From positions 124,001-188,000 of the IMG/VR virus record IMGVR_UViG_3300037502_003770: a DNA stretch of 64,000 bases. One strand, given 5' to 3'. The position numbers were made by a program, and so were the translations under genes. Below, piece after piece: positions 21,296 to 55,837 of the stretch (position 1 is the first letter of the stretch; each line of letters starts with the position of its first letter). The notes under the pieces were generated by a model. That model ran no database searches. It was not told the origin of the DNA and saw nothing but the letters and a program-made list of their open reading frames with translations.

Positions 21296-21306
21296 AACTT
21301 AATTAT

Positions 21307-23078: not shown

Positions 23079-23083
23079 TAACC

Positions 23084-32836: not shown

Positions 32837-34345
32837 ATGAGAGATATTAAGAACATTGATAAGCTGAGTGATAATAATCATAAGATAGATATTTTATCTT
32901 TAAATAAATTTTTAATTGAGAGGGGAGATAATTTTTTAGAAACTATTATTACAAACAATTATACCTTTATTAAGAGGGAAGATATTACAAAAGAATTTTT
33001 TCAATTAAATTATAAAAAGATTTTTCATGGTGAAAGTATTGATGATTTGGATTTTCTTGGTAAAGATTTTCCTATTGAGTGGTATAATGTGGATATTTTT
33101 AAATATATTCTTGATACATATTTTATTTTATTTCCAGCTTTTAAAACAATAAAATTATTTCCAAAGGAGATATTCTATATTTATAATTATTGCGAATTAT
33201 TTATTAAATATAATACAGTATTTTTAGAATATATACCAAAAGATATTGAGAATTATTATGAACTTGTTAAACAAGCTTTTATCAAATATGATGAGATAAT
33301 ATGGAAAAATTGGTTTCCAAAGGAATATATTCCTCAATTAAGAAAAGACTTTCCTGATAATTTAACTGTTAAAGCTTATATTCAATTAAAAAATTTATCA
33401 GAAAATAAAAATTCTTTATTAAGGGAAGATTATCGTTATGTATTAACTAATAGTGATGTATATCTTACTAAGAAGATAGAAGCTGTAAGTGATAAAAATA
33501 AGTTTGATGCTATTGCTTTTGATAAGTATTTACTTTCTTTTGGAAATAATGATTTACACAAGATATTATTTAATAAAAGGTATATTATTCCTAGTAAGGA
33601 GAGATTTCAAAAAAATTACATGAATATTTTAAGAAAGAATAATACTGTTAAAAATATTCATGGTTATGATGATGAGAAATATGGTTATTTAAGTTCTTTA
33701 ATACCTAAAGAGTATTATACTAAAGAAATGGTAGATAAGATAGTTGAACATTTTGGTTTATTTACTGTGGTAAAAAAGAGTCTAATAAATCAAAATGTTG
33801 ATGGGTTTGCTAATTTGGTTAAGGAGTATATTACGAATAGGGCTGTTTATTCAATACTTGCCAACATTAATCCTTATATTGAGGGTTATTATGATTTATT
33901 TAAATATGCAATTGAGAAAAATCCTTTTTCGATTAAATATTTAAATACTGAATTTGATAGGTATGAAGAGCTTGCTTTATTTGCTGTTTCTATTAGTGCT
34001 GGTGTCTTATTTTATATACCAGAATATAAAAGAAGTTATTATGTTTGTTTAAAAGCTGTTTCTGAAAATGGTTTTTTAATAAAAAGAGTACCAGAAGATG
34101 TTGAAAACTATTATTCTTTAGTAAAAGTTGCTTATTTACAGAATAAAGATAGTATTAATGAAATTAATTTAAATCCTTATTATATTGATATGTTAAAAAA
34201 GGATTTTCCTGAAGACGAGGAGCTTCAAAAAAAGAAAGGTTTTGATGATGTATTTGATGACCCTTATAATTTTCTTAAAGAACATATTTCAAAACAGGTA
34301 AGAAAGTTATTAAAAGAAGCTATTTATAAGAAAGGAAATTTTTAA
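32837..34345 (+). CDS. two-module DUF4116-like repeat protein with L-x-E linker and C-terminal tag; putative internal head protein
   Basis: KIDILSLNKFLIERGD start, (I/V)PxD(I/V)ENYY repeats, linker LSENKNSLLRE, tail LKEHISKQVRKLLKE. Confidence 0.7.
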   Translation: MRDIKNIDKLSDNNHKIDILSLNKFLIERGDNFLETIITNNYTFIKREDITKEFFQLNYKKIFHGESIDDLDFLGKDFPIEWYNVDIFKYILDTYFILFPAFKTIKLFPKEIFYIYNYCELFIKYNTVFLEYIPKDIENYYELVKQAFIKYDEIIWKNWFPKEYIPQLRKDFPDNLTVKAYIQLKNLSENKNSLLREDYRYVLTNSDVYLTKKIEAVSDKNKFDAIAFDKYLLSFGNNDLHKILFNKRYIIPSKERFQKNYMNILRKNNTVKNIHGYDDEKYGYLSSLIPKEYYTKEMVDKIVEHFGLFTVVKKSLINQNVDGFANLVKEYITNRAVYSILANINPYIEGYYDLFKYAIEKNPFSIKYLNTEFDRYEELALFAVSISAGVLFYIPEYKRSYYVCLKAVSENGFLIKRVPEDVENYYSLVKVAYLQNKDSINEINLNPYYIDMLKKDFPEDEELQKKKGFDDVFDDPYNFLKEHISKQVRKLLKEAIYKKGNF

Positions 34346-34944
34346 TGAAGAATTTTAATAAATTAAATGATACTAAACATGAGATAGATTTAATTTCTTT
34401 AAGTGATTTTTTACTTGAGAAGGATGATGATTATTTAGATAAGTTTATAAAAAAAGAATTTAAAAAACCTGAAGATATAACAGAGACATATCTTAAATTA
34501 TGGTATAAGTATATATTTAATATAGATAGTTATTTTGGTGTATCATACACTGAGTTTGATTTTACTGGTGATGATTTTCCTATTGAGTGGTATATGGATG
34601 CAAAATTTTTAGATACTTTATTTGAAGAATCTGGTATTAAGTTTTTAATGTGTGTACCAAAAGTATTAAGATATGATTATGAAGTTTGTGAACGTTCTAT
34701 TAATAAAAACCCTATTTCTTTAAAGTATGTCCCAAAAGATATTGAGAATTATTATGGTTTAGTAAAGCTTGCTTTTAAGAAAAAACAAAATTTAATTGGA
34801 CAAAAATGGTTTCCAAAGGAATATATTCCTCAATTAAAGAATGATTTGGATGATGAATTATCTCAACATTATTTAAATCTTCAGGAGCATATTTCAAAAG
34901 AAGTGAGGAAACTTTTAAAAGAATACTATTTAAAGAAAATATAG
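34345..34944 (+). CDS. DUF4116-like repeat protein with C-terminal tag
   Basis: EIDLISLSDFLLEKDD ... LQEHISKEVRKLLKE. Confidence 0.7.
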   Translation: MKNFNKLNDTKHEIDLISLSDFLLEKDDDYLDKFIKKEFKKPEDITETYLKLWYKYIFNIDSYFGVSYTEFDFTGDDFPIEWYMDAKFLDTLFEESGIKFLMCVPKVLRYDYEVCERSINKNPISLKYVPKDIENYYGLVKLAFKKKQNLIGQKWFPKEYIPQLKNDLDDELSQHYLNLQEHISKEVRKLLKEYYLKKI

Positions 34945-34948
34945 TTAG

Positions 34949-36511
34949 ATGGGATTAGTGTATAATAATAAGAGGATTAAAAAAGATATAAGTGATATTC
35001 ACAATATTGATATTATTTCTTTAAATAAATTTCTTCTTGATAAGGGTGATAAATTTTTTGGAAAGTTATTATATTACAATTGGTGTTTACTTCCTGATAA
35101 GGAGACTTTTCAAAAGAATTGGATGTATTATATTGAAAAGTACGATAAATACAATGAAGATGGTTTTGGTAAAAAATCAAATTTAATACCAAAAGAATAT
35201 TATACAAAAGAGATAATTAATTCTATATTAAAAACTGATTTTGATAGTAATCATAGTTTTACTTTAATTAATCAATATGCTGATGGTTTTGCTGAAAGTG
35301 TTAAGGGTTATTTATTAGATAGAGTTATGTATACAAATTTGTTATATTTTATTAAATCTGATATACCTGGTTATTTTGAGTTATGTAAATCTTTAATAAA
35401 AAAGAACCCATCATATATTGACTATGTACCTAAGACTTATGATAATCAAAAATTAGTTGAGCTTTGTGCGTTAGCTGTTTCTATTGATGGTATGATTTTA
35501 AGATATGTTAGAGATAAAATTGATTTATTTTCAAATCCAAATGTTATATATACGGCAATTAAAAATAATACAATAGCTTTAAGATTTGTACCTACTAGTA
35601 TAGAAAATTATTATTCTTTTCTTAAAACAGCTTATACATTAAATAAAAGAATAATTTCAATAGATAGTGCAAAAGAATATCTTGATGATTTAAAAAGAGA
35701 TTTTCCTGAAGATATAGATTTTATTGAGAAGCGAATTAATCTTCAAGAAAATAAATCTTTATTAAAGGAAGAGAATTTTAATGAGGAGTCTTTTGTTTTT
35801 ACTTCAGATAGACATAAGATAGATATTAAATCTTTAAGCAATTTCTTAATTGAGAAGGGTGACAGGGTTTTAGATACATTATTATATGCTCGTGGTTATA
35901 AGGAAATAGATTATTATTCAGATTTTTTTAGGGAAGAGATTATAAAATATGTTAATTCTGATATTATTAAAAAGATTCCAAAAGAATTGTGGGATGATTA
36001 TTCTTTTTGTTTAACAGTTTCTTCAAGAAATGGTTATTATGCAATTGATTTTATTAATGAAGATTTTTTAAATGATTATAATATTGTAAAAAATCTTTTA
36101 ACTCAACAAGGTGAATTAATAAATAAAGTTAATCCTGATATTTTGGATGAGAAATTAATTAGATTAGCGAATAAAACAAATACTAGTGGAAAAGATTTAA
36201 CTGATACTTGTTATTTTTGGGAACATTATGATGGGAGGTATGAATTATTAAAGAAAATTATTTCTGTATACCCTGATAAAATAAGGTTTATTAGACCTAG
36301 TGATAGTAGATTTGCTGTTGATAAAAAATATTATGAATTATTAAAAATAGCTTACTTAAAGAATAAGAATATTTTAAGATATAAAGATATTAAATACAAG
36401 TATACACCTTATTATGAAAAATTAAAAAATGAGTTTGGTATTAAATTTTATTTAAAAGAGTATATTTCAAAACAGGTAAGAAAGTTATTAAAAGAAAAAA
36501 TCTCCTTATAA
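34949..36511 (+). CDS. two-module DUF4116-like repeat protein
   Basis: Two ID.xSL..FL..KGD starts, linker LQENKSLLKEE, tail LKEYISKQVRKLLKE. Confidence 0.7.
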   Translation: MGLVYNNKRIKKDISDIHNIDIISLNKFLLDKGDKFFGKLLYYNWCLLPDKETFQKNWMYYIEKYDKYNEDGFGKKSNLIPKEYYTKEIINSILKTDFDSNHSFTLINQYADGFAESVKGYLLDRVMYTNLLYFIKSDIPGYFELCKSLIKKNPSYIDYVPKTYDNQKLVELCALAVSIDGMILRYVRDKIDLFSNPNVIYTAIKNNTIALRFVPTSIENYYSFLKTAYTLNKRIISIDSAKEYLDDLKRDFPEDIDFIEKRINLQENKSLLKEENFNEESFVFTSDRHKIDIKSLSNFLIEKGDRVLDTLLYARGYKEIDYYSDFFREEIIKYVNSDIIKKIPKELWDDYSFCLTVSSRNGYYAIDFINEDFLNDYNIVKNLLTQQGELINKVNPDILDEKLIRLANKTNTSGKDLTDTCYFWEHYDGRYELLKKIISVYPDKIRFIRPSDSRFAVDKKYYELLKIAYLKNKNILRYKDIKYKYTPYYEKLKNEFGIKFYLKEYISKQVRKLLKEKISL

Positions 36512-37165
36512 AAGGAGATTAATTTTTATTTGTTTAATTTCTTCTTTAAGAATTTTCTTTACTTGTTTTTGTATATATTCTTCAAGATAATTTCTATCGA
36601 TTTTATTTGGATTAACAATATTTAGTTTAATATTTCTTTGATTACAAAGGTTTTGTAGTTCATCTATAATTTCTTGAGGGTCACGATAATCCACATCCTC
36701 ATAATAATTATCTACTTTTTTTATATCTATTTGAATAATGTATTTTGAAAAATTTTCAATTCTATCTTTATTTGATAAAATCCTATCTTCATACTCAAAA
36801 TTCCTATCATCTTTATTAGCAAATTTAAAATGGTTAAATGGTTGACCTTTATAAGTTTGTGAAAGTTTTCTACCATCTAATTTTAATCTAACAATAAAAT
36901 CTAAATCATATAATTCTTTTTCATTCCAATCATTATTTAATTTATAAAAACCAGTTTTTGATGATTTAGTTCTACTTAGTGATAAATAATTATATCCATT
37001 TATATAATCATCATCTTCACCATATTTTAAATAAAAAATATCATCTTTTAAAATACTTATAATACTACTTAACGTTGTAAAATGATATACTTCATCAGTT
37101 ACAGATTCTTTTAATAAACTCTTTACTTGTTTTTGTATATATTCTTTTAATAATTGATTTTCCAT
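36506..37165 (-). CDS. ADP-ribosyltransferase-like domain flanked by two tags
   Basis: VYHFT...LSLSR...LDGRKL...FEYEDRILS; LKEYIQKQVKSLLKE at the N-end and LEEYIQKQVKKILKE at the C-end. Confidence 0.6.
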   Translation of the reverse strand: MENQLLKEYIQKQVKSLLKESVTDEVYHFTTLSSIISILKDDIFYLKYGEDDDYINGYNYLSLSRTKSSKTGFYKLNNDWNEKELYDLDFIVRLKLDGRKLSQTYKGQPFNHFKFANKDDRNFEYEDRILSNKDRIENFSKYIIQIDIKKVDNYYEDVDYRDPQEIIDELQNLCNQRNIKLNIVNPNKIDRNYLEEYIQKQVKKILKEEIKQIKINLLL

Positions 37166-37236
37166 TAAAAATAACTCTTTTATATAAATAGGTTTTATTT
37201 TAAAATTACTATTTAAGAAAAAGATGATTATTTTTA

Positions 37237-40200
37237 ATGAAAGATATTAATGTAATAAATGATAATAATAAGATAGATTTAAGTTCTTTGAATAAATTTC
37301 TTATTAGTAAAGGTGATGAGTATTTAGAATATTTATTAATTAGTAATGTTTATAATAAAAATATTACAGAAGACAAAATTAGAGAATATGTTTTAAAAGG
37401 TTATAATATTAAAGAAGAATTATTAAAGTTTGTTACAAAAGATAAAGAATTATATTCATATATTAGTTTAATGAATAAAGTACTTGAAGAAATATATAAA
37501 GAAAATTCAAGCGAAGAAGATACTGAGTTTTATATATTACCTTTAGATTTTATTAAAAGTAATAAATATTTTTCAATAGATAAATTTTTTAGTGTATATG
37601 GTGGGTATGCTATTAGATTTATACCATATGAATTACAAACAAAAGAATTATGGGAATTTTCAGCTTTAAAATCACCTTATTTTATAAGTGATGATAGTTT
37701 TCCTCAAGAGTATAAAAGTTATAATTTATTTTTAAAATTAATTGAGATTGAATCATCTCTTATTTATGATGCAGCTGATAGTAATATTTTTAATAAAGAT
37801 GAGATTTATAATTTATTCGAGTTTACATACAAAAAATATATTAAAGAAAATAATGTATCTGAATTTTGGAAAACACATAGATATAACCCATTAGATTTTA
37901 AAGATATATATCTTAAATTAGCAAGTAATTTTAAACATGAATCATATTTAAAAAAATATGGGATTCCTGATATTCATGATGTACCTAGATTTGCATTTAA
38001 TGAAAGTAAGTCTTTATTAAAAGAAGAAACTTTATTGGATAAATTTAAATTAATGGATGAAAATAAGATTGATTTATTTTCTTTAAATAAATTTCTTCTT
38101 TCAAAAGAAGATAATTTATTAGAATATTTATTATTAGAGAATAATTTAATTTTTGGTTTAGATGAAAATAAAATTAGAAACTTTATATTAAAAGGTTATA
38201 AACCGTTAGAAACATTTCCTAATAATATAAAAATTGATATGGATTTAAAGGAGTATGTTAATGTATTATTAACTTTTGAATCTATTAAATATATTCCTAA
38301 TGAGAAATATACTGTTTCGTATGCTAAATTAAAAGATAATAAATATATTTCAATAGAAGGTCTTTTAAAATATAATTCTTTATTTATTAGGTATATCCCT
38401 GAAAATTTATTAACACAAGAAATATGTAATAATGTATATAATAAAAATTACAGAATTTTTAGAGAAATTCCAAATAGGTTTAAAACATATGAAATGTGTG
38501 AAAATGTTATAGGTAAAAACGCATATTTTTTTGTTTATTTACCTGACCCTTTGGATAATGGTACTTTAATTACGGTTCAGGAATGTTATAAATTATTAAA
38601 ACTTGCTCATACTTATTATATTGATAAAGATAAATTTTCAAATGGTGTTGAACAATTTTGGAGTGATGCTATTGTTTCAAAATTAGATAGAGATTATTTT
38701 GTTAGATTAATGTATGAAGTAAATGCACAAGAATATGTAGGAAAATACGGTCAGGGTGGTATTAAGAAAAATAATAATCTTCAAGAAAGTAACTCTTTAT
38801 TAAAGGAAGAAGAATTCTTTAATGTAGAACAACTAGAATATGATTCAGATAAAAATAAAATAGATTTACAAGAATTAAGTGAATTTTTATATAATAACGG
38901 AGATGATTATTTAGAATATTTATTAGCCAATAAAGAATATATTAAAGTTGATAGTAAAAATGTTTTTAGATTATATAAAAATAAAAATTTTAAAGATGTA
39001 ACTGAATTTTTAAATATTGGTTATGATTTTTTAAATGTAATATTAACTGACCCTATTGAAAAAAACAAAATAGAACAATTTTATTTAAAAAACCGATACC
39101 CTCATGATTATCCAGATATTTTATGGGAAAGTCGTGCATTTTGTGAGGCTGCTTTAATTAAACAAAAGAGTTGTTTATATAAAGTACCACTTAAATTTAG
39201 AGATTATAAAATGTGTAAGCTTGCTGTTAGTTTTGATGGTGATAATATAAAAAGTGTACCTGAAAATATTGAGAATTATTATTCTCTTTGTGAAATGGCT
39301 GTTTCTCAAAGGGCTTGGTCTTTGATGTTAATTGATAAGAATAAATGGGATTATAATTTATATGAAAAAGCTGTTTCTCAGAATGGTGGTGTTTTATTTT
39401 ATATACCTGAAAAATATAGAGACTATAATTTATGTGAAAAAGCTGTATCTAGTGAACCTAGTTCAATATATGATGTACCTAAAAATATTGAGAATTACTA
39501 TTCTTTAATAAAACTTGCTTACTCAAAGGATAAAACAGTTATATTAGATATGAATTTACCAAAAGAGTATTTTGATAAATTAAAAAATGATTTTCCTAAA
39601 GACTTTAATCTTCAAGAAAGTAAGTCTTTGTTAAAGGAAGGAATTACTGATGAGGTATATCATTTTACAACATATCAATCAGCTGCTGAAATATTACAAT
39701 ATAATAGATTTAAATTTTCTATTGAGACTGAAGGTGATTCTTTATCAAGGATGAATAATTACAAAAATTATATGTCTGTAAGTAGGACTAAGTCTTTAAA
39801 TAAAGGTTTTTTTAATACAATAAAGAATGGTGTTAATTTAGTTATTAGATTTAAACTTGATGGTAGAAAATTAGCTCAAAAATATAAAGGTATTCCATTT
39901 AATTATTTCCCTGCTTGGGGTAAAGAAAATTATGCTTTTGAATATGAGGATAGATTGCTTTCAAATGATGAATATATTGAAAATTTTTCAAAATATCTTT
40001 TATCTGTAGATATTATTGATTTAACTATTGGAAATAATATAAATAAAACAAAAATCCATACAATAAAAGAATTATCTCAAAAATTAAATCTTGTTTGCAA
40101 TGTTTATAAACATGATGATAATAATATTGTAAGAAAACAATTTCAATCCGACCCGATTAATTTTATTAAAAATAAAGGAACTTTTGTTTTAAATGATTCT

Positions 40201-42216
40201 TTTTTTACAAAAGAAATTGTTGATGAAATATATAATCATTTTAAAGAAAATATTTATACATATATTCGTTTATCTCAAATACCAGCTGAATTTAGAAATT
40301 ATGAGCTTTGTGAATTATATATAAAAAAGAACCCTATTAATATTATAGGAGTACCTTCACCAAATAATACTTTAATAAAAAACAATTTAATATCAAGAGA
40401 AGAATATATGTCTTTGGTAAGGATAGCTTTTTCTTTAGATAAAAATATAATAGATTATATCCCAGATGAATTTGAGAAAATATTAAGAGATGAAATTAAT
40501 AAAGCAAGTAATAATAATCTTCAAGAAAGTAAATCTTTATTAAAGGAAGGTATTACTGATGAGGTGTATCATTTTACAAGTTTAGAAAATTTTATTAAAA
40601 TAATGAATACAAATACATTTAGATTTTCAGATTTATTATATGATTTAAGTGATGTTATTCATAATACACCTTTAAAAAAATATAAATATTATATGTCTTT
40701 AAGTAGGACTGGTTCAATAAAAACAGGTTATGGTAACTATCAAAGTGATAATAGTAATTTTATTGTTAGATTAAAAATAGATGGTAGAAAACTTTCGCAA
40801 AGTTATAAAGGTCAACCAATAAATTATCATAATTATGGTAGAAAACAAAAATCTAGTAAAAAAACTAGTTTTAGATTTGAATATGAGGATAGAATATTAT
40901 CCAATAAACCAACTATTGAGAATTTTTCAAATTATGTTTTAAGTGTTGATATTATTAAAATTACTAATTCATCTAATAATTTTTTATTAGATGATGATAT
41001 GAAATCATTAGAATATATATTAAAAAATAAAGAAAATTATAACGCACCAATAAATTTCACAAATGAAAAAAATTCACCTCTTAATGAAAATAAATCTTTA
41101 TTAAAGGAAGGTATTACTGATGAGGTGTATCATTTTACAAGTTTAGAGAATTTAATTAGAATATTAAAAAGTAATTCTTTAAATTTAAGTTTTATGGATA
41201 ATGATATTAATCAGACTTGGAATAGGAAAGATAGCAATATACATAAAACTTTAAATAAATATATGTATTTTTTATCATTAAGTAGAACAAAGAGTATTGA
41301 TAAAGGTTATGCTCAAGTATTAAAATCACAAAATATACCTGTCATTACCAGAATTAAACTTGATGGTAGAAAACTTTCTTTTAATAATAAAATTATACCT
41401 TTTGATTATAATCAAACTATTAGCCGAAATGTTAATAAAAATGATAAATATTTTGAATACGAAGATAGATTAGTTAGTGATAAATCTTCAATTAAAAATA
41501 TAAATAATTATATTTTAGAGATTGATATTTTTATGTATTATAATTATGATTTTCAAAAAGATAGTTTTTTATTCTTAAAAGAATATCAAAATACCACAAA
41601 TATACCGATAAAAGTTTTTAATAAAGTAAAAAATAATTCTTTAAATGAAAGTAAATTATTATTAAAGGAAGATTATACAGAGGAAGAAGTTTTAGAAGAA
41701 ATAAGTGATAAAAATAAAATAGATTTAATTTCTTTAAATAAATTTCTAAAAGAAAATAATGATGATTATTTAGAATATTTATTATTTTATAATGATTTTT
41801 TAAATATAGAAAGAAATATTATAAAAATAGTAAAAAATAAATACATTACAGGTTTTGGTAGTTTCCCAATAAAATATTTATATCAACCAAAAGTAATAAG
41901 AGAAATAGTATTAAGAAATCCTGAATTATTAGAAAGATTGAATTTATATTACTTAGAAAGAATGGAAGATAGTAAACAGGAAATGAAAGATATTTACAAA
42001 TACGCTGTAATAAATAAACCAAATATGTTATCACGTATACCAACTAATCTACCTTATTATGATGAACTGCTTGAGGTGATGTTTCAAAAAGATAGAGGTA
42101 ACTTATTTGATTTATTAATTATTCAACCAAAATCTATTCAACAAAGTAATATGTTAAATAAAGTAATATCTTTTTTACAAAATAAAGGTTATACTTTAGG
42201 AAAAAATCCTTCTTAA
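37237..42216 (+). CDS. 1659 aa seven-module polyprotein (4 DUF4116-family-type modules and 3 ART-like modules)
   Basis: Six (L/F)(Q/N)E(S/N)(K/N)(S/L)LLKE linkers at 37996, 38779, 39610, 40519, 41080, 41641. Confidence 0.75.
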   Translation: MKDINVINDNNKIDLSSLNKFLISKGDEYLEYLLISNVYNKNITEDKIREYVLKGYNIKEELLKFVTKDKELYSYISLMNKVLEEIYKENSSEEDTEFYILPLDFIKSNKYFSIDKFFSVYGGYAIRFIPYELQTKELWEFSALKSPYFISDDSFPQEYKSYNLFLKLIEIESSLIYDAADSNIFNKDEIYNLFEFTYKKYIKENNVSEFWKTHRYNPLDFKDIYLKLASNFKHESYLKKYGIPDIHDVPRFAFNESKSLLKEETLLDKFKLMDENKIDLFSLNKFLLSKEDNLLEYLLLENNLIFGLDENKIRNFILKGYKPLETFPNNIKIDMDLKEYVNVLLTFESIKYIPNEKYTVSYAKLKDNKYISIEGLLKYNSLFIRYIPENLLTQEICNNVYNKNYRIFREIPNRFKTYEMCENVIGKNAYFFVYLPDPLDNGTLITVQECYKLLKLAHTYYIDKDKFSNGVEQFWSDAIVSKLDRDYFVRLMYEVNAQEYVGKYGQGGIKKNNNLQESNSLLKEEEFFNVEQLEYDSDKNKIDLQELSEFLYNNGDDYLEYLLANKEYIKVDSKNVFRLYKNKNFKDVTEFLNIGYDFLNVILTDPIEKNKIEQFYLKNRYPHDYPDILWESRAFCEAALIKQKSCLYKVPLKFRDYKMCKLAVSFDGDNIKSVPENIENYYSLCEMAVSQRAWSLMLIDKNKWDYNLYEKAVSQNGGVLFYIPEKYRDYNLCEKAVSSEPSSIYDVPKNIENYYSLIKLAYSKDKTVILDMNLPKEYFDKLKNDFPKDFNLQESKSLLKEGITDEVYHFTTYQSAAEILQYNRFKFSIETEGDSLSRMNNYKNYMSVSRTKSLNKGFFNTIKNGVNLVIRFKLDGRKLAQKYKGIPFNYFPAWGKENYAFEYEDRLLSNDEYIENFSKYLLSVDIIDLTIGNNINKTKIHTIKELSQKLNLVCNVYKHDDNNIVRKQFQSDPINFIKNKGTFVLNDSFFTKEIVDEIYNHFKENIYTYIRLSQIPAEFRNYELCELYIKKNPINIIGVPSPNNTLIKNNLISREEYMSLVRIAFSLDKNIIDYIPDEFEKILRDEINKASNNNLQESKSLLKEGITDEVYHFTSLENFIKIMNTNTFRFSDLLYDLSDVIHNTPLKKYKYYMSLSRTGSIKTGYGNYQSDNSNFIVRLKIDGRKLSQSYKGQPINYHNYGRKQKSSKKTSFRFEYEDRILSNKPTIENFSNYVLSVDIIKITNSSNNFLLDDDMKSLEYILKNKENYNAPINFTNEKNSPLNENKSLLKEGITDEVYHFTSLENLIRILKSNSLNLSFMDNDINQTWNRKDSNIHKTLNKYMYFLSLSRTKSIDKGYAQVLKSQNIPVITRIKLDGRKLSFNNKIIPFDYNQTISRNVNKNDKYFEYEDRLVSDKSSIKNINNYILEIDIFMYYNYDFQKDSFLFLKEYQNTTNIPIKVFNKVKNNSLNESKLLLKEDYTEEEVLEEISDKNKIDLISLNKFLKENNDDYLEYLLFYNDFLNIERNIIKIVKNKYITGFGSFPIKYLYQPKVIREIVLRNPELLERLNLYYLERMEDSKQEMKDIYKYAVINKPNMLSRIPTNLPYYDELLEVMFQKDRGNLFDLLIIQPKSIQQSNMLNKVISFLQNKGYTLGKNPS

Positions 42217-42236
42217 TTAGAAGGATTTATTTTTTT
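42203..42236. terminator. bidirectional terminator between convergent genes
   Basis: AAATCCTTCT-taatt-AGAAGGATTT. Confidence 0.7.
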
Positions 42237-42258
42237 ATAATAAGATACCTCGTTTATT

Positions 42259-43221: not shown

Positions 43222-43224
43222 GTT

Positions 43225-45411: not shown

Positions 45412-46211
45412 TATTCAGGTTTATTAATATTATTTTTGATACTAAATAATTCTTGGTTATTAACACTATATTTATTAATAATTGAAGTTGGTGCTTTCAC
45501 TATTTGGAAATCTGATTTCTTAATAAGATAACCTCTTAAAACAACTTTAAATACTTTTACATAATATCTTTTTCCTTCAAGGTCATTTAATGTTCCATCG
45601 GAACTAACATCTTCAAGATTTAAAGGCATGTAATGACCGTTTACATTAATATATAATTGTCTTTCATTAAACTTATTTAAATAAAGTTCAACCATTTCAT
45701 TTACATCGGTTATAAAAGCTGATATTAATCTTATTTCATATTCAATATCTATTGGAGTTGGTTGAGTTATTTTATAATGAATATATGTTAACATATCATT
45801 TTCAATAACAGGCATTTTATAATAACTAAAAGCTTTTTTATTAGGAATATTAAATTTCTCTCCGTAGATAGTTCCTTTAAGAATATTGGTTCTTTCCATT
45901 GTTATAAATGGAGGAACAAGGTTTTTATTATCATCTTGCAAGTGCCAAGTTTTTTGAAATTCACCCCATCTTTCATTATTCATAAAAATTGTATCAACTT
46001 TAACTCTTTCATCATTTTCACTAAGAATTGATAATGATAAATCACCTTCATTTGTACAATTAAATACAGCAATATCCAAATCGGCAATATCAATACTTTG
46101 AGGTAAAAAAGTAGAGTTTTCATCTGTTTGATTTAACAGTTCTTCAACACGAACAATTCCAACATTTGTAGGGTATGTATTTCTTAAAGAAGTTTTTTTA
46201 GGTAGAGCCAT
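45411..46211 (-). CDS. tail completion / sheath terminator (T4 gp15-like)
   Basis: VPPFITMER and QPTPIDIEYEIRLISAFITDVNEMVE resemble gp15-family motifs; structural gene context. Confidence 0.55.
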   Translation of the reverse strand: MALPKKTSLRNTYPTNVGIVRVEELLNQTDENSTFLPQSIDIADLDIAVFNCTNEGDLSLSILSENDERVKVDTIFMNNERWGEFQKTWHLQDDNKNLVPPFITMERTNILKGTIYGEKFNIPNKKAFSYYKMPVIENDMLTYIHYKITQPTPIDIEYEIRLISAFITDVNEMVELYLNKFNERQLYINVNGHYMPLNLEDVSSDGTLNDLEGKRYYVKVFKVVLRGYLIKKSDFQIVKAPTSIINKYSVNNQELFSIKNNINKPE

Positions 46212-46965
46212 TTACTTTTCTTTTAAATAGTAATTCTTTTAAAAGTTTTTTTACCTCTCTTGAAATATATTCTCTTAAATTAAACTTCTCTTTTATTTGT
46301 TTTAATATCAAAGGGTCTTCTATATAGTAAATAAGGGTTTTATCATTAGAAACAACTATTTCCCAAAGGTGAAAATCTTGTAAATGTTTAGGTACATGAA
46401 ATATTGAATCAGAAAAACTTAAAACAGCTTTTTCACAAAGAGAGTAATCTATAATTTTTTTAGATACATATGGTAAACAACCATATTGAGACGTAACAGC
46501 TTTTTCACAAAGAGAGTAATAATTTTCAATATTATCAGGTACAAATTGTAAAGCTGTGCCATCTTGAGAAATAGCTTTCTCGCAAAGAGAATAATCTCTT
46601 AATTCTTCTGGCACAAATTCTAAAGCTGTTCCATTTGTAAAAACAGCTTTCTCACAAATAGAATAATCTCTTAAATGTTTAGATACAAATTCTAAAATCC
46701 AACCATTTTTAGAAACAGCTTTTTCACGAAAAGAATATATATTCCATAATTCTTTTGGTATACGTTTAATATCATCTTCTTCATTGCTGTATATTATACT
46801 TATATAATAATTTAGTAATCTTTTATTAGAAAGGTTTTTTTCTTTAAAACCATTTACTTGCAATAATATATCTATTAAATCATCTCCTTTCTCAAGTAAA
46901 AAATTATTTAAAGAAAGTAAATCTATTTTATGTTTATCACTTATATTTTCTAACTTATTATTCAT
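46198..46965 (-). CDS. DUF4116-like repeat protein with C-terminal tag
   Basis: 25 aa repeats VPEELRDYSLCEKAxxxGxALxF; tail LREYISREVKKLLKE. Confidence 0.8.
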   Translation of the reverse strand: MNNKLENISDKHKIDLLSLNNFLLEKGDDLIDILLQVNGFKEKNLSNKRLLNYYISIIYSNEEDDIKRIPKELWNIYSFREKAVSKNGWILEFVSKHLRDYSICEKAVFTNGTALEFVPEELRDYSLCEKAISQDGTALQFVPDNIENYYSLCEKAVTSQYGCLPYVSKKIIDYSLCEKAVLSFSDSIFHVPKHLQDFHLWEIVVSNDKTLIYYIEDPLILKQIKEKFNLREYISREVKKLLKELLFKRKVNGST

Positions 46966-47002
46966 TATAAAAAATTACTTTTCTTTTAAATAGTAATTCT
47001 TT
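46212..47002. repeat. 28 bp perfect direct repeat flanking gene 46198-46965
   Basis: TTACTTTTCTTTTAAATAGTAATTCTTT at 46212-46239 and 46975-47002. Confidence 0.85.
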
Positions 47003-47010
47003 ACTATTTA
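46987..47010. promoter_or_regulatory. divergent pair of putative late promoters (CTATTTA)
   Basis: TAAATAG at 46987 (minus) and CTATTTA at 47004 (plus); motif recurs before most late genes. Confidence 0.6.
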
Positions 47011-47025
47011 CAATAAACAATATTT

Positions 47026-47502: not shown

Positions 47503-47506
47503 GAAA

Positions 47507-48991
47507 ATGAAAATTAAAAATATAAAAAGAATTTTAAAGGAAGAAACCAAAGGTGAAAGATATTTGAATAGTAAACTATCTAATATGGGTCCTATGGGTA
47601 TATCAAGACAGATTAGTAATCTTGGTGGTTACGGTCAAATAGATACTTTAAAGAAAGCTGAAGAAGAATTTTATAAATTACATAGAGTAGAATTTAAATT
47701 AAATAATCAAAAATATGAGGGTTATTTTATTGTATATCCTCAAAGTGATAATACTCTTATTTTTTATGATGGTTTACCCTTTGCAAAAAAGAGAGATACG
47801 ATGTATACAGGCGGTGAATTAAATAAAGATAAATCTGTAATATTTACAGGTTCAAGAGTAGATTTACAACTTTTAAAAACATATCAAAACTTTCTAAAAA
47901 GATTTAATTTAAAAAGTATAGTGTTAAAAGGATTTCCTGATATTACTGAACAAATTAAAAAAAATATAATTGTTGATGTAAAATTATTTTTTGAACAATT
48001 ATATAATCTTTTTATTATAAAAAATGAATTTTATAAAGAAATAGATGATTTTATAAATATATTTACTCAATTAAAAAAATACCCAAAAAATAGTAGATTG
48101 AATCGTAATGTAATTGATAAATATACTAATTTTAGAAATAATTTTGTTAATAGTAATGTATTGGAAAATAATATATTTAATGTCTTTAATAGTTATAATG
48201 TTGATGAAGCTTTTAATACTAGTGATATATCTGGTTTGTATATATATTTTAATTTTATAAAAAATAATATCGAAGAAATAAGAAATTCATCATCACAAAT
48301 AATTAAATTTTTAGAAAATTTATCTAATAAAAATAGTACCAGAATTAGTCAACCGTTTATCAGTAGTGATAAATATGATGTTAGTTATATTGTTAACGTA
48401 AAAAATAATTTATTACCAGGTGTTAAATCAGAATTAAAAAATCAAATACTTGAATTTACCTATATTAGTGAAAACTTAATAGATAAATCTAACTATAAAA
48501 TGGGTAAATCTTTGGGTGTTATGAAAATTAATGGTATATCTTTGAATATGAGGGATAAAAATGATAAATATGAAATAATATTTGATGCTGAAAAAAGTAT
48601 TATTTCATTAACTATTAACGGTAATAAACAATCTGGTAGTGATAGGGATAATAGTCTTAAAAAAATATTAGATAATATTTTTATTCAAAAATTTAATGGT
48701 GAATTTAATTATATAAATACTAAATTAATAAATGATGCTATAAATAATAAAATGTATAATTTTAATTATATTGAAAATAATAATAGACATTATCGTTTAG
48801 GTAGGTCAGGCGCACCTTTTAAATTTGATATTCTTTTCTATAATGACTTAGATGGTACAATGTTTAAAGGTAAATTACCTAACATTAATATTATATCCTT
48901 ACAAATAAATGATTTTAAAATATTAAAAGAACAGACAACATATATAGATGAAATAAAAATAAATATTGAATTTATATCAACAAATAATTAA
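47507..48991 (+). CDS. hypothetical protein with N-terminal ILKEE tag
   Basis: MKIKNIKRILKEE. Confidence 0.7.
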   Translation: MKIKNIKRILKEETKGERYLNSKLSNMGPMGISRQISNLGGYGQIDTLKKAEEEFYKLHRVEFKLNNQKYEGYFIVYPQSDNTLIFYDGLPFAKKRDTMYTGGELNKDKSVIFTGSRVDLQLLKTYQNFLKRFNLKSIVLKGFPDITEQIKKNIIVDVKLFFEQLYNLFIIKNEFYKEIDDFINIFTQLKKYPKNSRLNRNVIDKYTNFRNNFVNSNVLENNIFNVFNSYNVDEAFNTSDISGLYIYFNFIKNNIEEIRNSSSQIIKFLENLSNKNSTRISQPFISSDKYDVSYIVNVKNNLLPGVKSELKNQILEFTYISENLIDKSNYKMGKSLGVMKINGISLNMRDKNDKYEIIFDAEKSIISLTINGNKQSGSDRDNSLKKILDNIFIQKFNGEFNYINTKLINDAINNKMYNFNYIENNNRHYRLGRSGAPFKFDILFYNDLDGTMFKGKLPNINIISLQINDFKILKEQTTYIDEIKINIEFISTNN

Positions 48992-48993
48992 AT

Positions 48994-51483: not shown

Positions 51484-51488
51484 TTAAT

Positions 51489-52418
51489 ATGGATTTATTT
51501 TTTGATAAACAAACATTATTGGATAGAGAAACTAGTAATCCTACTAGTTCAAACCCTACTGGTCTTAGAAGTACTAAGACTATACATAAGGGTATTGTTG
51601 TTAGTGTAGATGATAGTGAGAATGGTAAAAGAATTAAAGTTCGTTTAACTGGTTTTGATGATGGCGTTACTGATGAAAATTTACCTTATTGTTATCCTTT
51701 ACTTCCTTTTAATATTACAATTACACCAACAGAAAAGAGTATTGTAAGAGTAATTATTTCTGATATTTCAGCTCCTTATCAAGATAGATTATATATTTCA
51801 GAAGTTATTTCACAATTTCAAAATTTAAATGGTCAACCGTTTTTTATTGATACTAAAAATAAATATAGTGAAGAAGCTTTATTTAATCAAAATAAAAATC
51901 AACCAATAAAAAATATACCAACAGTAGGTGATTTATACCCTAAAAATAAAAAAGAATTATTAGATACAATTTCATTTAATAGTAAAAACGGTAAAACCGA
52001 TTTATTATTAAATGAAAACTATTATTCTTTAAGGACAAATAAATTTAAAGTAAGTAATACTGAAAAGAATTTAACTAACCCTTGTTATATAAACGGTTTT
52101 TTAGAACCAAAGAAAAATGTTAACTATAATATAATTAATTCTGATAAGATATTTTTACTTTCAAATAAAACCAATCTTAATTATAATAAGAATTTAATAG
52201 AAAGTAAAGACTCTCAAGAAATAGATAATTTATTAAAACAAGTTCATAATGTTGGTTATGGTGATACCATTGCAGAGTTTTTAGATTTATTTAGAAAGGC
52301 TTTTACAAACCACGTTCATTCTTATGATGGTAAAGAACCAATTAATAGTGATTTTATTAAAAAATTAAATGAATTTGATTTATCAAGAATATTCTCAAAA
52401 GATATACATATTAATTAA
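51489..52418 (+). CDS. baseplate central spike (gp5/gpV/VgrG-type OB-fold)
   Basis: GIVVSVDD..GKRIKVR...LPYCYPLLP...RLYI; C-terminal NHVH metal-binding motif. Confidence 0.7.
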   Translation: MDLFFDKQTLLDRETSNPTSSNPTGLRSTKTIHKGIVVSVDDSENGKRIKVRLTGFDDGVTDENLPYCYPLLPFNITITPTEKSIVRVIISDISAPYQDRLYISEVISQFQNLNGQPFFIDTKNKYSEEALFNQNKNQPIKNIPTVGDLYPKNKKELLDTISFNSKNGKTDLLLNENYYSLRTNKFKVSNTEKNLTNPCYINGFLEPKKNVNYNIINSDKIFLLSNKTNLNYNKNLIESKDSQEIDNLLKQVHNVGYGDTIAEFLDLFRKAFTNHVHSYDGKEPINSDFIKKLNEFDLSRIFSKDIHIN

Positions 52419-52455
52419 AATAATATACTATTTATAATTAAAATAATTAATAATT

Positions 52456-53211
52456 ATGATTAATTTAGGTATTATAAAAACAAATCTGAGTAGAGTTGTA
52501 GCTGAGAATCTATTATCTGAAAATAAAGATATTAATAAAGTTGATTTATATAAAAATTTTTTAAATATTCTTAAAACATCAGATATTCTTATGTTGGAAT
52601 ATAATATATTTAAAAATTTTGAACAAAAGAATCATTCTATTGAATCAGCTTATAATTTAATATCTGAAAATTTAAGACCGATAAAGTCTTTTACAAAGAA
52701 AGAAATTATTAATGAGAATAAAAAAATAAAAGATTTTAATTTAAAAAATAATCTTTCTCAAAAAGAAAACACTTTTTATAATGCTATTCATAATTTAATT
52801 ATGGAATCAACAGCTAAATATCCTGATATTAATCTTTTACATGAATCACATGAAATTATATTAAATTCTTTACTTGAAAAAAAATCTCTTATTAAAGAAG
52901 AAAGACAAATTAATAAAGTAAATAATGCTGTTATAAATTTGGCTACTAAAAAAATTAATGAAGAGATAGGTAAATTCTCTTCTAAAGAAAAAGATATATT
53001 GCAAACTTTATCTAAAGGAACTTTTAATGATAAAGTAATGTTGCTTGAAAATATTAAAGGTGAGTGTAAGATATTAATAGAAGATTCTAAATCTTTAATA
53101 GAAGATTATGTTTATGAAAATACTATTAATAAAATAAATAATATTGATGCAACGCCTGAAACTATAAATGAATCAATACTTGATTTATATTCTTTGTTAA
53201 GTGATGAATAA
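52456..53211 (+). CDS. hypothetical late protein
   Basis: 251 aa with many L/I-x-E sites; CTATTTA at 52428. Confidence 0.75.
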   Translation: MINLGIIKTNLSRVVAENLLSENKDINKVDLYKNFLNILKTSDILMLEYNIFKNFEQKNHSIESAYNLISENLRPIKSFTKKEIINENKKIKDFNLKNNLSQKENTFYNAIHNLIMESTAKYPDINLLHESHEIILNSLLEKKSLIKEERQINKVNNAVINLATKKINEEIGKFSSKEKDILQTLSKGTFNDKVMLLENIKGECKILIEDSKSLIEDYVYENTINKINNIDATPETINESILDLYSLLSDE

Positions 53212-54007
53212 ATTAAAAGTAATTAATGATAATAATCAAATAGATTTACTTTCTTTAAGTAATTTTTTATTAAGAAAAAAAGATGATTATCTTGAAGCTT
53301 TATTAAAAATAAATGGTTATAAAAAATTAATTATTGATTATAATAGTGATTTCTTTTTTGATAGAATTTTACCATACGGAGAATCAAAATATTTTAATGT
53401 AAATATAATACCAGACCAATATTGGTATAATTATGATTTTTGTATGAGAGCCATTTCGTCTAATGGCTGTGGTTATTTATTATCTTATGTACCGAAAGAA
53501 TTAAGAGATTATAAACTTTGTAAGAAAGCTGTATCTGATAAAAATAGTGCTGGTATTATTTTAGGTTTTGTTCCAAAAAAATTAAGAGATTATTCTCTTT
53601 GTGAAATAGCTGTTTATAGTGATTGGATGAATTTAGAATATGTACCAGAAAATTTAATAGATTCTTCTTTATGTGAAATAGCTATCACTCAAAATGGTTA
53701 TTCTTTAAAATTTGTACCGAAAGAATTAAGAGATTATTCTCTTTGTGAGAAAGCTGTTAATAATAATGCTTTCGCTTTACAGTTTGTTCCTAAAAATATT
53801 GAAAATTATTATTCTTTACTAAAAATAGGTTTTAAACAATACGATTCAGCTTTAGTTAGTAATGAATGGTTTCCAATAAACTATATTCCTCAATTAATCA
53901 AAGATTTTCCACAATATAAAGAATCACTTGAATCGTATCTTCTTCAAGAATATATTAAAAAAGAAGTAAAGAAATTATTAAGGGAGTACTATTTAAAAGA
54001 AAAATAG
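53201..54007 (+). CDS. DUF4116-like repeat protein with C-terminal tag
   Basis: VPKELRDYSLCEKAV repeats; LQEYIKKEVKKLLRE. Confidence 0.8.
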   Translation: MMNKLKVINDNNQIDLLSLSNFLLRKKDDYLEALLKINGYKKLIIDYNSDFFFDRILPYGESKYFNVNIIPDQYWYNYDFCMRAISSNGCGYLLSYVPKELRDYKLCKKAVSDKNSAGIILGFVPKKLRDYSLCEIAVYSDWMNLEYVPENLIDSSLCEIAITQNGYSLKFVPKELRDYSLCEKAVNNNAFALQFVPKNIENYYSLLKIGFKQYDSALVSNEWFPINYIPQLIKDFPQYKESLESYLLQEYIKKEVKKLLREYYLKEK

Positions 54008-54008
54008 T

Positions 54009-55250
54009 ATGTCGTTTTTCAATTGTAACCTTGATGAAATCAATAAATATAAGATAGTAGATATTGATATATCAGATAATAAATCATGGAATTTAAATAC
54101 TGGTTTAACTATTAATTCATTAAAAAAATATAATGATGCAATAACATCTACTTTTGAATTACCTACTTATGGATTAACAGCGTTTGATTATGGTTTAGTT
54201 AATTCATTAACAGCAACAACTACCATCAATTATACAGATAATAAATTAAAATTACAAAGAGTAGGAGAAAATGATTTTACTGGTAATACAAGTTATACTG
54301 GGTATAGTATTACACCTGTAACAACAGCTACTACTGTAGGGAATTATTTTCTTTTAGAAGGAGGATATTTTACAGGGTTTTATAAACTTCATGATTATGA
54401 ATATGAAATATTACCTTATAGATATAACGAAGGTTTAACTATTTCAACATGGATTAATGTACAATCAGGTATTACTTTTGAAAATATTTTATCTGAAAAA
54501 GATGGTTTCTTTTTTTATATGGGTGCTTTAGCTGAGAATAAATATTCATTAGCTTATTCAGGTGATACAATATATTCTTCTTTTACTGGAACAAATATCA
54601 CAAAAAATGTAGATTTATCAGGAAATACAACAGGTTTAACAAATATTTTTTTAAATGACCATACTGATTTAGAATCAGGTATTACTAAAAATATAATAGC
54701 TTTTAGAATAAATCAAAATAAACAGATAGGTTATAGATTTTTAGATTATACTGGAAATACAATAGAAAATTATTCTGATAAAGAAATTTCTTATGGATGG
54801 AATAATATTACAATAACATTTAAACCAAAAGAATTAATTAAAGATAAAGATTTATTAAATTGTTATAAAGATAGGGATATGGTATTGACAATTTATTTAA
54901 ATGGGATTATTATTTATGAAGAAATAGATTTTAAAGAAATATGGTTTAAAGAAATGTTTACTGAAAGAGAAAAACAATTACATATACCATATGTTATTAA
55001 TTGGGGTGGAGGTAGTTTTGGTTTAAAACATTCTTGGCATTTCAATAATTCATTAAATGAGTTTATTCAAGATGAAAGAAAAAAAGATTTATTAATTGAG
55101 AAAAATTTTGATGGTTCTTTTTATGGTGGTATTCAAAAATTGGAATTATATAATAAAGCGTTAAATTTTATTGAGGTAAGAAAAATTATTGAATATTATT
55201 CAAAATATAATATAAATAATTTTAAAGGCGGAAGATTGATTAATATATAA
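54009..55250 (+). CDS. LamG/concanavalin-A-like virion protein
   Basis: LTISTWIN, GWNNITITF, TIYLNG, FYGGIQKLELYNKALNFIEV. Confidence 0.65.
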   Translation: MSFFNCNLDEINKYKIVDIDISDNKSWNLNTGLTINSLKKYNDAITSTFELPTYGLTAFDYGLVNSLTATTTINYTDNKLKLQRVGENDFTGNTSYTGYSITPVTTATTVGNYFLLEGGYFTGFYKLHDYEYEILPYRYNEGLTISTWINVQSGITFENILSEKDGFFFYMGALAENKYSLAYSGDTIYSSFTGTNITKNVDLSGNTTGLTNIFLNDHTDLESGITKNIIAFRINQNKQIGYRFLDYTGNTIENYSDKEISYGWNNITITFKPKELIKDKDLLNCYKDRDMVLTIYLNGIIIYEEIDFKEIWFKEMFTEREKQLHIPYVINWGGGSFGLKHSWHFNNSLNEFIQDERKKDLLIEKNFDGSFYGGIQKLELYNKALNFIEVRKIIEYYSKYNINNFKGGRLINI

Positions 55251-55837
55251 TGAAGAATATTGATAAGGTTAGTGATAGAAATCAAATAGATTTACTTTCT
55301 TTAAATAAATTCTTTATTGAGAAAGGGGATGATGAATTAGAATATTTATTATGGAATAATCAACTTATAGATACTAATTATTCAAATGAACGTATACAAA
55401 ATTATATTATAAAAAGATTTCAACCTAATGAAATAAAGAATGAGTTTTATTTATCATATAAATTTTGTGAAAAAATAGTTACTAAAGATGGTATGGCTTT
55501 AATGTATGTACCCGAACATTTAAAAGATTATAATCTTTGTGAGAAAGCTGTTAATAATGAACCATATGCTATACATTTTATACCAAAAACAATAGAAAAT
55601 TACTATGAATTAGTAAAAATTGTTTTTAAATTAGCAGTTAAATGGAAATTAAAAGAGTCTGAAATTTTTAAATATATATCAAGAGATGATTTAATACAAT
55701 TAAAAAAAGATTTTCCAGAACATATAGATTTTTTTGATGAGCTTAACTTAAAAGAATATATTTCCAAAGAAGTAAGAAAATTATTAAAAGAACAAATTTT
55801 TAAAAATAAAAACTATTTAATTAAAAATATAAAATAA
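55250..55837 (+). CDS. DUF4116-like repeat protein with C-terminal tag
   Basis: QIDLLSLNKFFIEKGD ... LKEYISKEVRKLLKE. Confidence 0.75.
   Translation: MKNIDKVSDRNQIDLLSLNKFFIEKGDDELEYLLWNNQLIDTNYSNERIQNYIIKRFQPNEIKNEFYLSYKFCEKIVTKDGMALMYVPEHLKDYNLCEKAVNNEPYAIHFIPKTIENYYELVKIVFKLAVKWKLKESEIFKYISRDDLIQLKKDFPEHIDFFDELNLKEYISKEVRKLLKEQIFKNKNYLIKNIK

Follow-up and report, generated by a model that had tools for sequence, protein, structure and literature searches.

In bacteriophage T4, the prohead protease gp21 cuts after (L/I)-x-E, as at ITE-6 and LTE-619 in the ADP-ribosyltransferase (ART) Alt and at the candidate site LIE-9 in gp21 itself (PMC5694885, PMC9026906), and small basic cargo proteins carry an N-terminal capsid-targeting sequence of 10 residues with one L-x-E, in which residues 8, 7, 4 and 10 matter for processing and targeting (PMC9026906). 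Alt is cut by gp21 at both ends, and in phiKZ-like giant phages (phiKZ, 201phi2-1, SPN3US) a gp21-related protease cleaves many head-internal proteins, including families of paralogues, on the C-terminal side of Glu (PMC5694885). Polyvalent proteins and head-packaged ARTs represent a further arrangement, in which several effector modules, ARTs among them, are joined in one large polypeptide, the gene of which lies near head genes and the injection of which is predicted (PMC5512222, PMC9503650). The present analysis concerns a stretch of 64,000 nucleotides (hereafter the window), corresponding to bases 124001-188000 of the 312,694-bp contig Ga0310151_0000017 (JGI metagenome 3300037502; IMGVR_UViG_3300037502_003770), which belongs to an uncultured jumbo phage of the T4 superfamily. 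In this window a short peptide tag recurs on proteins with DUF4116 repeats and on ART-fold modules resembling Tpt1 and DarT. Judging from its sequence, the tag is probably a longer, movable counterpart of the capsid-targeting sequence of T4 that also contains two sites for cutting by the gp21-type protease which the phage encodes; because of this resemblance to the T4 targeting and cleavage signal, it is probable that the tagged proteins are packaged in the head, released by cleavage and injected together with the DNA.

The tag exists in two forms (Table 1, where genes are listed by position; in the text they are named by their first coordinate). The long form comprises 15 residues, L-x-E-[YH]-I-x-[KR]-[EQ]-V-[RK]-[KS]-[LFI]-L-[KR]-E, and a six-frame scan of the window found exactly eight copies, six at gene ends and two on 36506-37165(-), in full agreement with the original prediction, made from the sequence alone, of a tag that ends six genes and brackets an ART-like protein. 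The short form, [LIF]-x-E-[SN]-[KN]-(N)-[SL]-L-L-[KR]-E, which that prediction missed as a class, is present at every module junction of the multi-module proteins, with eight copies in the window (one in 32837, one in 34949 and six in 37237). L-x-E occurs twice in either form, and LL(K/R)E is the ending of both. Counting back from the final Glu (P1), L15, E13, I11, V7, L3 and E1 are invariant in 14 long tags (13 from this genome and one from a relative, L012), V at P7 and L, F or I at P4 being invariant or nearly so, while 12 short tags (eight from the window and four from L012) invariably have LL at P4-P3 and E at P1, with K (11/12) or R (1/12) at P2 and S, N or K at P7. Tags occur at N-terminal, C-terminal and internal positions and on three unrelated types of cargo, the third being found in relatives. 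LL[KR]E occurs 31 times in approximately 30,000 residues of the genome, compared with 3.2 +/- 1.7 in within-protein shuffles, and SLL[KR]E 10 times compared with 0.2, both counts being inflated by paralogy. N-terminal leader positions in the window are confined to 36506 (20 aa), 47507 (12 aa) and 58257 (14 or 26 aa); the last two, MKIKNIKRILKE and MKIKSSELKKLINE...ALLKE, had been put forward as weaker versions of the tag and are credible as leaders, whereas the C-terminus of 58954, put forward with them, contains no L-x-E and is unconvincing. Scanning IMG/VR with a strict degenerate DNA pattern of the tag returned only this contig, at 12 sites, although the pattern under-counts, missing tags with TAC-coded Tyr such as that of L005 6041; relatives of the phage were found in ENA/JGI assemblies.

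The T4 leaders, as read from the T4 genome, are MKTYQEFIAE|A (ipII and ipIII), MAKINELLRE|S (gp24) and MNEPQLLIE|T (gp21), so that the gp24 leader ends in the same LL(K/R)E word as the tags; some variation in this targeting sequence is tolerated by T4. The hydrophobic residues at P3, P4 and P7 of the long tags, together with Glu at P1, correspond to residues 8, 7, 4 and 10 of the T4 peptide; in both systems a short peptide ending in (L/I)-x-E is placed on unrelated cargo, and in both a gp21-family protease is encoded. The protease of the present phage (L010:9329-9997), which the original prediction had suggested looking for elsewhere in the genome, lies 12 kb past the window in a gp21-scaffold-gp23 module; it is a Peptidase_S77 (Pfam E 1.2e-27), 36% identical to T4 gp21, with the catalytic His (HP) and Ser (SSRGLGS) motifs kept. 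The two systems differ in that the T4 sequence has 10 residues and one L-x-E, whereas the long tag has 15 and two; in that the T4 sequence is N-terminal, whereas the tags are mostly C-terminal or internal and also act as spacers in a polyprotein; and in that the small basic cargo of T4 is replaced here by a large family of DUF4116 solenoids as putative cargo. Measured against a T4-style N-terminal leader of about 10 residues, the tags of the DUF4116 genes are C-terminal or internal, and what they have in common with it is their sharing across unrelated cargo. Unlike long tags and leaders of the T4 type, the short form has no hydrophobic P7 and may serve for cleavage alone. The proteases of phiKZ-like phages, in contrast, recognise (S/A/G)-x-E, what they take off is mostly a long propeptide at the N-terminus, and neither a portable common tag nor a polyprotein spacer is described for them in the literature covered.

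Homologues of the ART module bear on the tag directly. A profile of the module found 3,330 clusters among 1.84 billion representatives searched. In the best 150 of these clusters, there are 77 domain starts no more than 30 residues from the N-terminus, and 73 (95%) of them have [LIVMF]-x-E at positions -6 to -4, counted from the Asp that is conserved in the first strand. The leaders of the homologues are 6-25 residues long and end in (L/I)-x-E, some of them (MKTYYDYITE, MLTYKQYIAE) being almost identical to the T4 sequence MKTYQEFIAE (PMC9026906), and the LLKE of the present phage ends at exactly the position where the homologues' leaders end (LLKE|GITDEVYHFT). On a TARA contig (L014), an ART homologue stands in a row of four different genes with the common leader MKYLK(I/L)FE(Q/S)FL(N/R)E, just as the T4 internal-protein genes ipII and ipIII have one leader in common. 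Other polyproteins of the ART family contain up to ten matched module stretches, with up to eight motif-scan copies per protein, each preceded by (L/I)-x-E-G; spacers of this kind are therefore not confined to the present genome. In cultured phages, among them the jumbo phages of Vibrio (about 253 kb), Dickeya (JA29) and Salicola (SCTP-2) as well as Alishewanella phage Slickus01, all members of the family are annotated as 'hypothetical protein'. On the evidence of these leaders, the ART module is probably a widespread type of head cargo. Together with the protease, the DUF4116 matches and the ART fold, the homologue leaders ending in (L/I)-x-E lend computational support to the capsid-loading tag originally proposed.

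The ART-like module has a core of about 170 residues and was modelled with AlphaFold2 (AF2) from 12 sequences (predicted local distance difference test, pLDDT, 72.7). Foldseek matched the model to Tpt1 (7yw4, E 2e-4) and DarT1 (8baq, E 7e-4), with Tpt1/DarT matches in the range 2e-4 to 7e-3, and an independent comparison by VIA-align gave Z scores of 11.0 to Tpt1 and of 9.4, 9.3 and 8.4 to DarT, followed by many ART toxins. The label ART-like given to this protein from its sequence is thus right at the level of the fold, and the model places the module in the nucleic-acid-directed part of the ART superfamily. Since a profile of the alignment gave only chance matches against PDB sequences, the assignment required fold comparison. 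The match to Tpt1 covers only residues 107-230 of 7yw4, the lobe that binds nicotinamide adenine dinucleotide (NAD), the module starting at strand 1 directly after the tag, and the module is therefore not an orthologue of Tpt1. The N-terminal, RNA-binding lobe of Tpt1 holds most of its catalytic Arg-His-Arg-Arg tetrad. As candidates for the catalytic/NAD motif of ARTs, an H-Y-E or R-S-E triad, residues Y27, S62, R65, D97-K100, E124, E126, D127 and R128 are invariant in the 12-sequence alignment, and H28 is invariant among the four ART copies of the phage and replaced by R in P0003. In the model the tag forms a helix (residues 2-18), and residues 15-21 (KSLLKES) form the hinge of lowest confidence before strand 1, where the cleavage site looks exposed. 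A predicted complex of the protease with the 219-aa ART-like protein scored 0.00, which speaks neither for nor against cleavage. The tagging of this protein at both ends would parallel the double cutting of T4 Alt, likewise an ART-fold enzyme between two propeptides bounded by (I/L)-x-E (PMC5694885); unlike Alt, it has a fold matching Tpt1/DarT rather than Alt/VIP2, is much smaller and recurs three times inside a polyprotein.

This polyprotein (37237) has short tags at every junction, from which its module order is read as head, head, head, ART(+DUF4116), ART, ART, head, the word head denoting here the N-terminal segment of the DUF4116 modules described below. In Pfam it matched DUF4116 only, with no MuF, portal or peptidase domain. 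Its modules, in contrast to those of polyvalent proteins, are separated by a repeated site of the prohead-protease type, no Zn-peptidase was matched by Pfam, and most of them are paralogues of a single repeat family, with two module kinds in all.

The other cargo is the family to which this head segment belongs. Twelve head modules in seven genes had been predicted, and a six-frame regular-expression scan with [KQEN][IF]D[LIA]x[SEA][LF][SND]x[FY][LF] returned exactly 12 motifs, all in seven genes (32837, 34345, 34949, 37237, 46198(-), 53201 and 55250). The suggested Pfam check for DUF4116 was positive: against a gathering cut-off of 24.9 bits, DUF4116 (PF13475) scores 35-81 bits in 32837, 34949, 37237, 46198, 53201, 55250 and 55837, so that the DUF4116-like description stands for six of the seven head genes, 34345 remaining sub-threshold at 20.1 bits, and extends to 55837-58236, which had not been counted. 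The repeat period read from the sequences, 24-25 aa, agrees with the approximately 25 aa predicted. The AF2 model of the 255-aa member (46198) is an all-alpha solenoid (pLDDT 89.9), the final helix of which (218-253) bears the long tag; in BFVD it matches DUF4116 proteins from giant viruses and from a small number of phages (E down to 7e-8), and Foldseek against PDB found nothing under E 0.05, only generic helical repeats. The head segment consists of three or four short helices, and an atlas search with the head alone (residues 1-62) gave scores at noise level. In an alignment of 16 members, 28-54% identical overall, no other block is as well conserved as the head and the tag. The same 24-25-residue helical repeat and alpha-solenoid model are known from DUF4116 proteins of bacteria, eukaryotes and giant viruses (PMC8078820), whereas only the phage's own clade adds the head, a WFPKEYIPQL(I/K)KDFPE block and the tag, none of which is present in the more distant DUF4116 matches.

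Some members of the family show additional features. The 799-aa protein of 55837-58236 has a basic, Cys-containing N-terminal region (approximately residues 17-100) and a long C-terminal part, neither of them matched by Pfam. Just past the window end, L001 13096-14127 (+) encodes a member with the variant tag LIEFIKKEIARVLTE, which is followed by a very basic, K-rich tail of about 50 residues, the tails of other members having 4-14. In L001 17066-18337 (+), of 423 aa, an N-terminal region with a weak, sub-threshold resemblance to nucleotidyltransferases (MTPAP-like palm, E 7e-4) is joined to a head+DUF4116 module, with the tag-like stretch YTLKEGIFKKVKKHLKE at the joint.

Comparison of the tags with one another and with those of relatives points to conservation of the peptide. 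Among the 14 long tags, here all compared within this genome, the codons of a pair are the same in 54% of cases, differ synonymously in 20% and non-synonymously in 27%, whereas non-synonymous pairs reach 85% in the ten codons before the tag and 78% in the six after it; the longest DNA word shared between long tags has a median of 11 nt, a few pairs sharing 27-49 nt. Tag codons being mostly identical or synonymous, flanks diverged and shared DNA short, selection is taken to be on the peptide. Related phages differ by whole modules with tags as boundaries. On ENA KRAE22 scaffold_4011 the polyprotein has 1255 aa, compared with 1659 aa here, and a different number of modules, which occasional recombination at tags would account for, such recombination being likely a by-product; the same scaffold encodes a 922-aa protein with a long tag between a DUF4116 and an ART module. 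The third tag-bearing cargo domain of the relatives (P0021, L012 7389-10157 and L017 6872-7201; EVYGNKAI.YHRT...GSMYG(A/S)GLYTT) has no Pfam match and is absent from the window; its tag is N-terminal in P0021 and L017 6872. Several sites of the processing type recur in a second relative: KRAE22 scaffold_180 (L017) keeps LLE-8 and LLKE-19 in the protease, LLTE-7 in a 365-aa protein (367 aa here), NLQE and MLNE in the capsid protein and, as a (V/I)LKE motif, ILKE near the C-terminus of the scaffold protein.

Some tagged genes in two relatives (L012 6879-10157, L017 6872-8339) are split relative to their homologues: a split ART gene ends at 159 aa, with its C-terminal piece heading the next open reading frame (ORF), and a third-domain gene is split into 109 + 391 aa, compared with 444 aa in P0021. 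These splits could be assembly errors or natural breaks.

Taken as a mechanism, the preferred reading would run as follows. The tagged proteins would be made late in infection, together with head and tail proteins, and the long tag, as an amphipathic capsid-targeting helix, would bind the scaffolding core of the prohead, around which the gp23 shell would then enclose the cargo. Once activated, the gp21 homologue would cut at two places, behind the Glu of the first L-x-E and behind the one that closes LL(K/R)E; individual modules would thereby come loose from the core and from their neighbours, and the 1659-aa product would yield seven pieces. The freed modules would stay in the head with the DNA and be ejected into the next host. 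From what the modules look like, we infer that the ejected cargo would comprise DUF4116 alpha-solenoids, each with its N-terminal head, and Tpt1/DarT-like ART-fold enzymes; host components, plausibly nucleic acids or targets in defence, would probably be bound by the diversified solenoids and modified by the enzymes.

Several points weigh against this reading. Most tags are C-terminal or internal, whereas classical T4 targeting peptides are N-terminal; cutting at a C-terminal tag would remove only 4-26 residues, which makes targeting by a C-terminal helix an extrapolation, for which T4 Alt and gp21, with their C-terminal propeptides, offer the only precedents. With short tags and no long one, the 1659-aa polyprotein leaves its targeting unexplained, and the mechanism leaves the head segment without explanation. 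In the ART family, the fixed distance from L-x-E to strand 1 could be partly structural. (L/I)-x-E is moreover a weak motif in a proteome rich in K, E, L and I, small proteins of one family, encoded at 10-23 kb of the window, likewise begin with MKE.L(I/L).E, and the LLKE of the 394-aa protein of the head-gene module is not kept in KRAE22 scaffold_180. The T4 late-promoter word TATAAATA is not enriched (47 found compared with 43.6 expected), a count that is uninformative because the genome is AT-rich; one copy lies 47 nt upstream of 37237. Transfer of the T4 gp23 cleavage site was tried and rejected: LTE|A of T4 aligns to ETV-A, the nearest L-x-E (MLNE) lying 12 residues upstream, and the transfer, being weak, is not counted as support.

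Among other explanations, the tag might be an amphipathic helix that is never cleaved, serving as a coiled-coil oligomeriser or as a dock on the capsid surface, neck or fibres, with the short form as a flexible linker. The position of the tag within the long terminal helix (218-253) of a confident model, the spacing of its hydrophobic residues at every 3-4 positions and the location of the genes amid tail and baseplate genes all fit such a helix, which we nevertheless regard as unlikely, since it gives no account of a peptide preceding the enzyme domain exactly where thousands of homologues carry a T4-type L-x-E leader, of the two invariant L-x-E units in both forms, or of use at N-terminal, C-terminal and internal positions alike. 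The proteins might instead be cytoplasmic and unpackaged, acting in the producing cell, with the tags serving another protease or remaining unprocessed and the ART taking part in RNA repair like KptA/Tpt1. Tpt1 is indeed the nearest fold, and jumbo phages are known to encode KptA for tRNA repair (PMC9503650); matching of the NAD lobe of Tpt1 alone, with the RNA-binding N-lobe missing, homologue leaders near-identical to the T4 targeting sequence and common leaders in a gene row point to packaging, and cytoplasmic repair is accordingly considered rather improbable.

Conservation of the tags mainly as DNA, as short homology boxes for duplicating, deleting or swapping modules with no role for the peptide, would suit the whole-module differences bounded by tags in relatives and the 27-49 nt shared exactly by some tag pairs. 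It is made very unlikely by the 11-nt median of the longest shared word, by tags in which one-fifth of codon pairs are synonymous and amino acids fixed between diverged flanks, and by the persistence of L-x-E in distant homologues whose DNA is unrelated. An origin by chance from the composition of an AT-rich genome, helped by recent gene duplication, has in its favour a G+C content of about 22%, proteins rich in K, E, L, I and N, and the inflation of motif counts by paralogy. It was rejected as extremely improbable, given that LL[KR]E is ten-fold above within-protein shuffles, that tag and head are the best-conserved blocks among paralogues 28-54% identical, and that the codon-pair pattern contradicts it, as does the presence of the tag on unrelated domains.

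Table 1. Tagged genes, modules and tags in the window (positions counted from its first base).
Feature	Position	Strand	Basis
Two head+DUF4116 modules, 502 aa; short tag aa 187-197, long tag C-terminal	32837..34345	+	Pfam, motif scan
Short tag LSENKNSLLRE, between two modules of 32837	33395..33427	+	
Long tag LKEHISKQVRKLLKE	34274..34318	+	
One head module, 199 aa; long tag C-terminal; DUF4116 sub-threshold	34345..34944	+	
Long tag LQEHISKEVRKLLKE	34879..34923	+	
Two head+DUF4116 modules, 520 aa; short tag between, long tag C-terminal	34949..36511	+	
Short tag LQENKSLLKE, between two modules of 34949	35741..35770	+	
Long tag LKEYISKQVRKLLKE	36452..36496	+	
ART-fold protein (Tpt1/DarT-like), 219 aa, long tag at both ends	36506..37165	-	Motif scan, model, fold search
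Long tag, C-terminus of 219-aa ART-like protein	36542..36586	-	
Long tag, N-terminal leader of 219-aa ART-like protein	37106..37150	-	
Polyprotein-like gene, 1659 aa, seven modules, six short tags between	37237..42216	+	
Short tag FNESKSLLKE, polyprotein junction 1	37996..38025	+	
Short tag LQESNSLLKE, polyprotein junction 2	38779..38808	+	
Short tag LQESKSLLKE, polyprotein junction 3, before ART 1	39610..39639	+	
ART-like module 1 and headless DUF4116-like stretch, starting directly after LLKE	39640..40518	+	Inside polyprotein
Short tag LQESKSLLKE, polyprotein junction 4, before ART 2	40519..40548	+	
ART-like module 2	40549..41079	+	Inside polyprotein
Short tag LNENKSLLKE, polyprotein junction 5, before ART 3	41080..41109	+	
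ART-like module 3	41110..41640	+	Inside polyprotein
Short tag LNESKLLLKE, polyprotein junction 6, before last head module	41641..41670	+	
Head+DUF4116, 255 aa, C-terminal long tag	46198..46965	-	Solenoid model
Long tag LREYISREVKKLLKE	46234..46278	-	
Candidate N-terminal targeting leader MKIKNIKRILKE, 12 aa, of 494-aa protein upstream of tape measure gene	47507..47542	+	
Head+DUF4116, 268 aa, C-terminal long tag	53201..54007	+	
Long tag LQEYIKKEVKKLLRE	53942..53986	+	
Head+DUF4116, 195 aa, C-terminal long tag	55250..55837	+	
Long tag LKEYISKEVRKLLKE	55748..55792	+	
DUF4116 repeats, 799 aa, without head, without canonical tag	55837..58236	+	
Candidate N-terminal leader MKIKSSELKKLINE...ALLKE (LINE-14, LLKE-26) of 201-aa coiled-coil protein	58257..58334	+	

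The terminase large subunit TerL is of the T4 type, with about 30% identity to cultured myoviruses. The Portal_T4 gene just past the window carries an intein (L001 14549-16954 (-), approximately 1.6 kb past the window end; Pfam order Portal_T4, Intein_splicing, Portal_T4), and its product has a long, Gly-rich C-terminal tail. The head-gene module after the portal encodes the 367-aa protein, Peptidase_S77, the 394-aa protein, an acidic, scaffold-like protein of 482 aa and Gp23, while helicase, TnpB-like, tape-measure-like and baseplate-hub-like genes are found within the window. Genes of the tagged/DUF4116 family are intermingled with tail, baseplate, portal, protease and capsid genes, and at least seven more occur in about 36 kb of contig sequence examined beyond the window, one of them between TerL and portal and two others a short way upstream of the protease gene. 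Searches of PHROGs and Pfam with the neighbouring structural genes were mostly empty. No cultured phage is close at the DNA level: a near-identity DNA search of INPHARED phages gave no match, and tblastn of the same set with the 255-aa family member none at E 1e-5.

Other features of the contig were recorded in passing. From approximately 6000 to 23100 of the window (+) lie about 45 small ORFs (80-160 aa), many of them paralogues beginning with MKE(K/N/I)L(I/L)(Q/K)E(I); several have LIKE or LLKE within their first 20 residues, so LLKE alone is less specific, and they may have an unrelated N-terminal helix or be small cargo of the internal-protein type. Between 20001 and 24000 the GC skew, positive in other + strand gene blocks, turns to about -0.35 though the ORFs called there remain +. 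Two TnpB/IS605 OrfB-like genes (OrfB_IS605 and Cas12f1-like TNB; PHROG transposase, E 1.6e-126) are located at 18228-19403 (+) of the window, amid small early-type genes, and at L010 5370-6572 (-), in the head-gene region between DUF4116 genes. A 507-aa Mom-like + GIY-YIG (+NUMOD1) gene (L010 14547-16070 (-)) directly follows the gp23 capsid gene, the place that the GIY-YIG homing endonuclease gene segD occupies after gene 23 in T4. Elsewhere on the contig, L005 3938-6040 and 6569-9082 encode N/S/T-rich proteins of 700 and 837 aa without Pfam match, which alternate with two more tagged DUF4116 genes and are possibly fibre-like or otherwise structural.

T4-type capsid targeting and processing by a prohead protease were known already; new would be the bipartite form of 15 residues, its use at any position and as a polyprotein spacer, and its presence both on DUF4116 solenoids and on members of a large ART family, Tpt1/DarT-like and hitherto unannotated. 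A broader proposition, which we hold tentatively and with slightly less than even confidence, is that the tag is a position-independent, bipartite cassette for loading and cutting, by which, from either protein end or from between modules, one gene could supply the head with up to seven independent proteins; that at least 16 DUF4116 genes could form an injected library, its expansion driven by the cassette, with the head segment as common functional handle; and that the ART family, with its roughly 3,300 clusters and, in some members, about ten modules in tandem, each behind an L/I-x-E, could represent unrecognised and very common injected enzymes of T4-like and jumbo phages, processed by prohead proteases.

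If the capsid-targeting reading is true, the T4 principle would widen in three respects: the tag would no longer have to be an N-terminal leader of 10 residues but could stand anywhere in a protein, it would serve polyproteins dissected within the prohead as well as single proteins, and its cargo would comprise a large, diversifying family where T4 has a few small internal proteins. DUF4116, a widespread repeat without known function, would gain its first concrete phage setting, as candidate injected host-binding proteins, and an unannotated ART family of thousands of clusters would be flagged as probable head cargo. A tag that loads and then releases its cargo, usable at either end of a protein, could also broaden the existing T4-type tools for protein packaging (PMC9026906).

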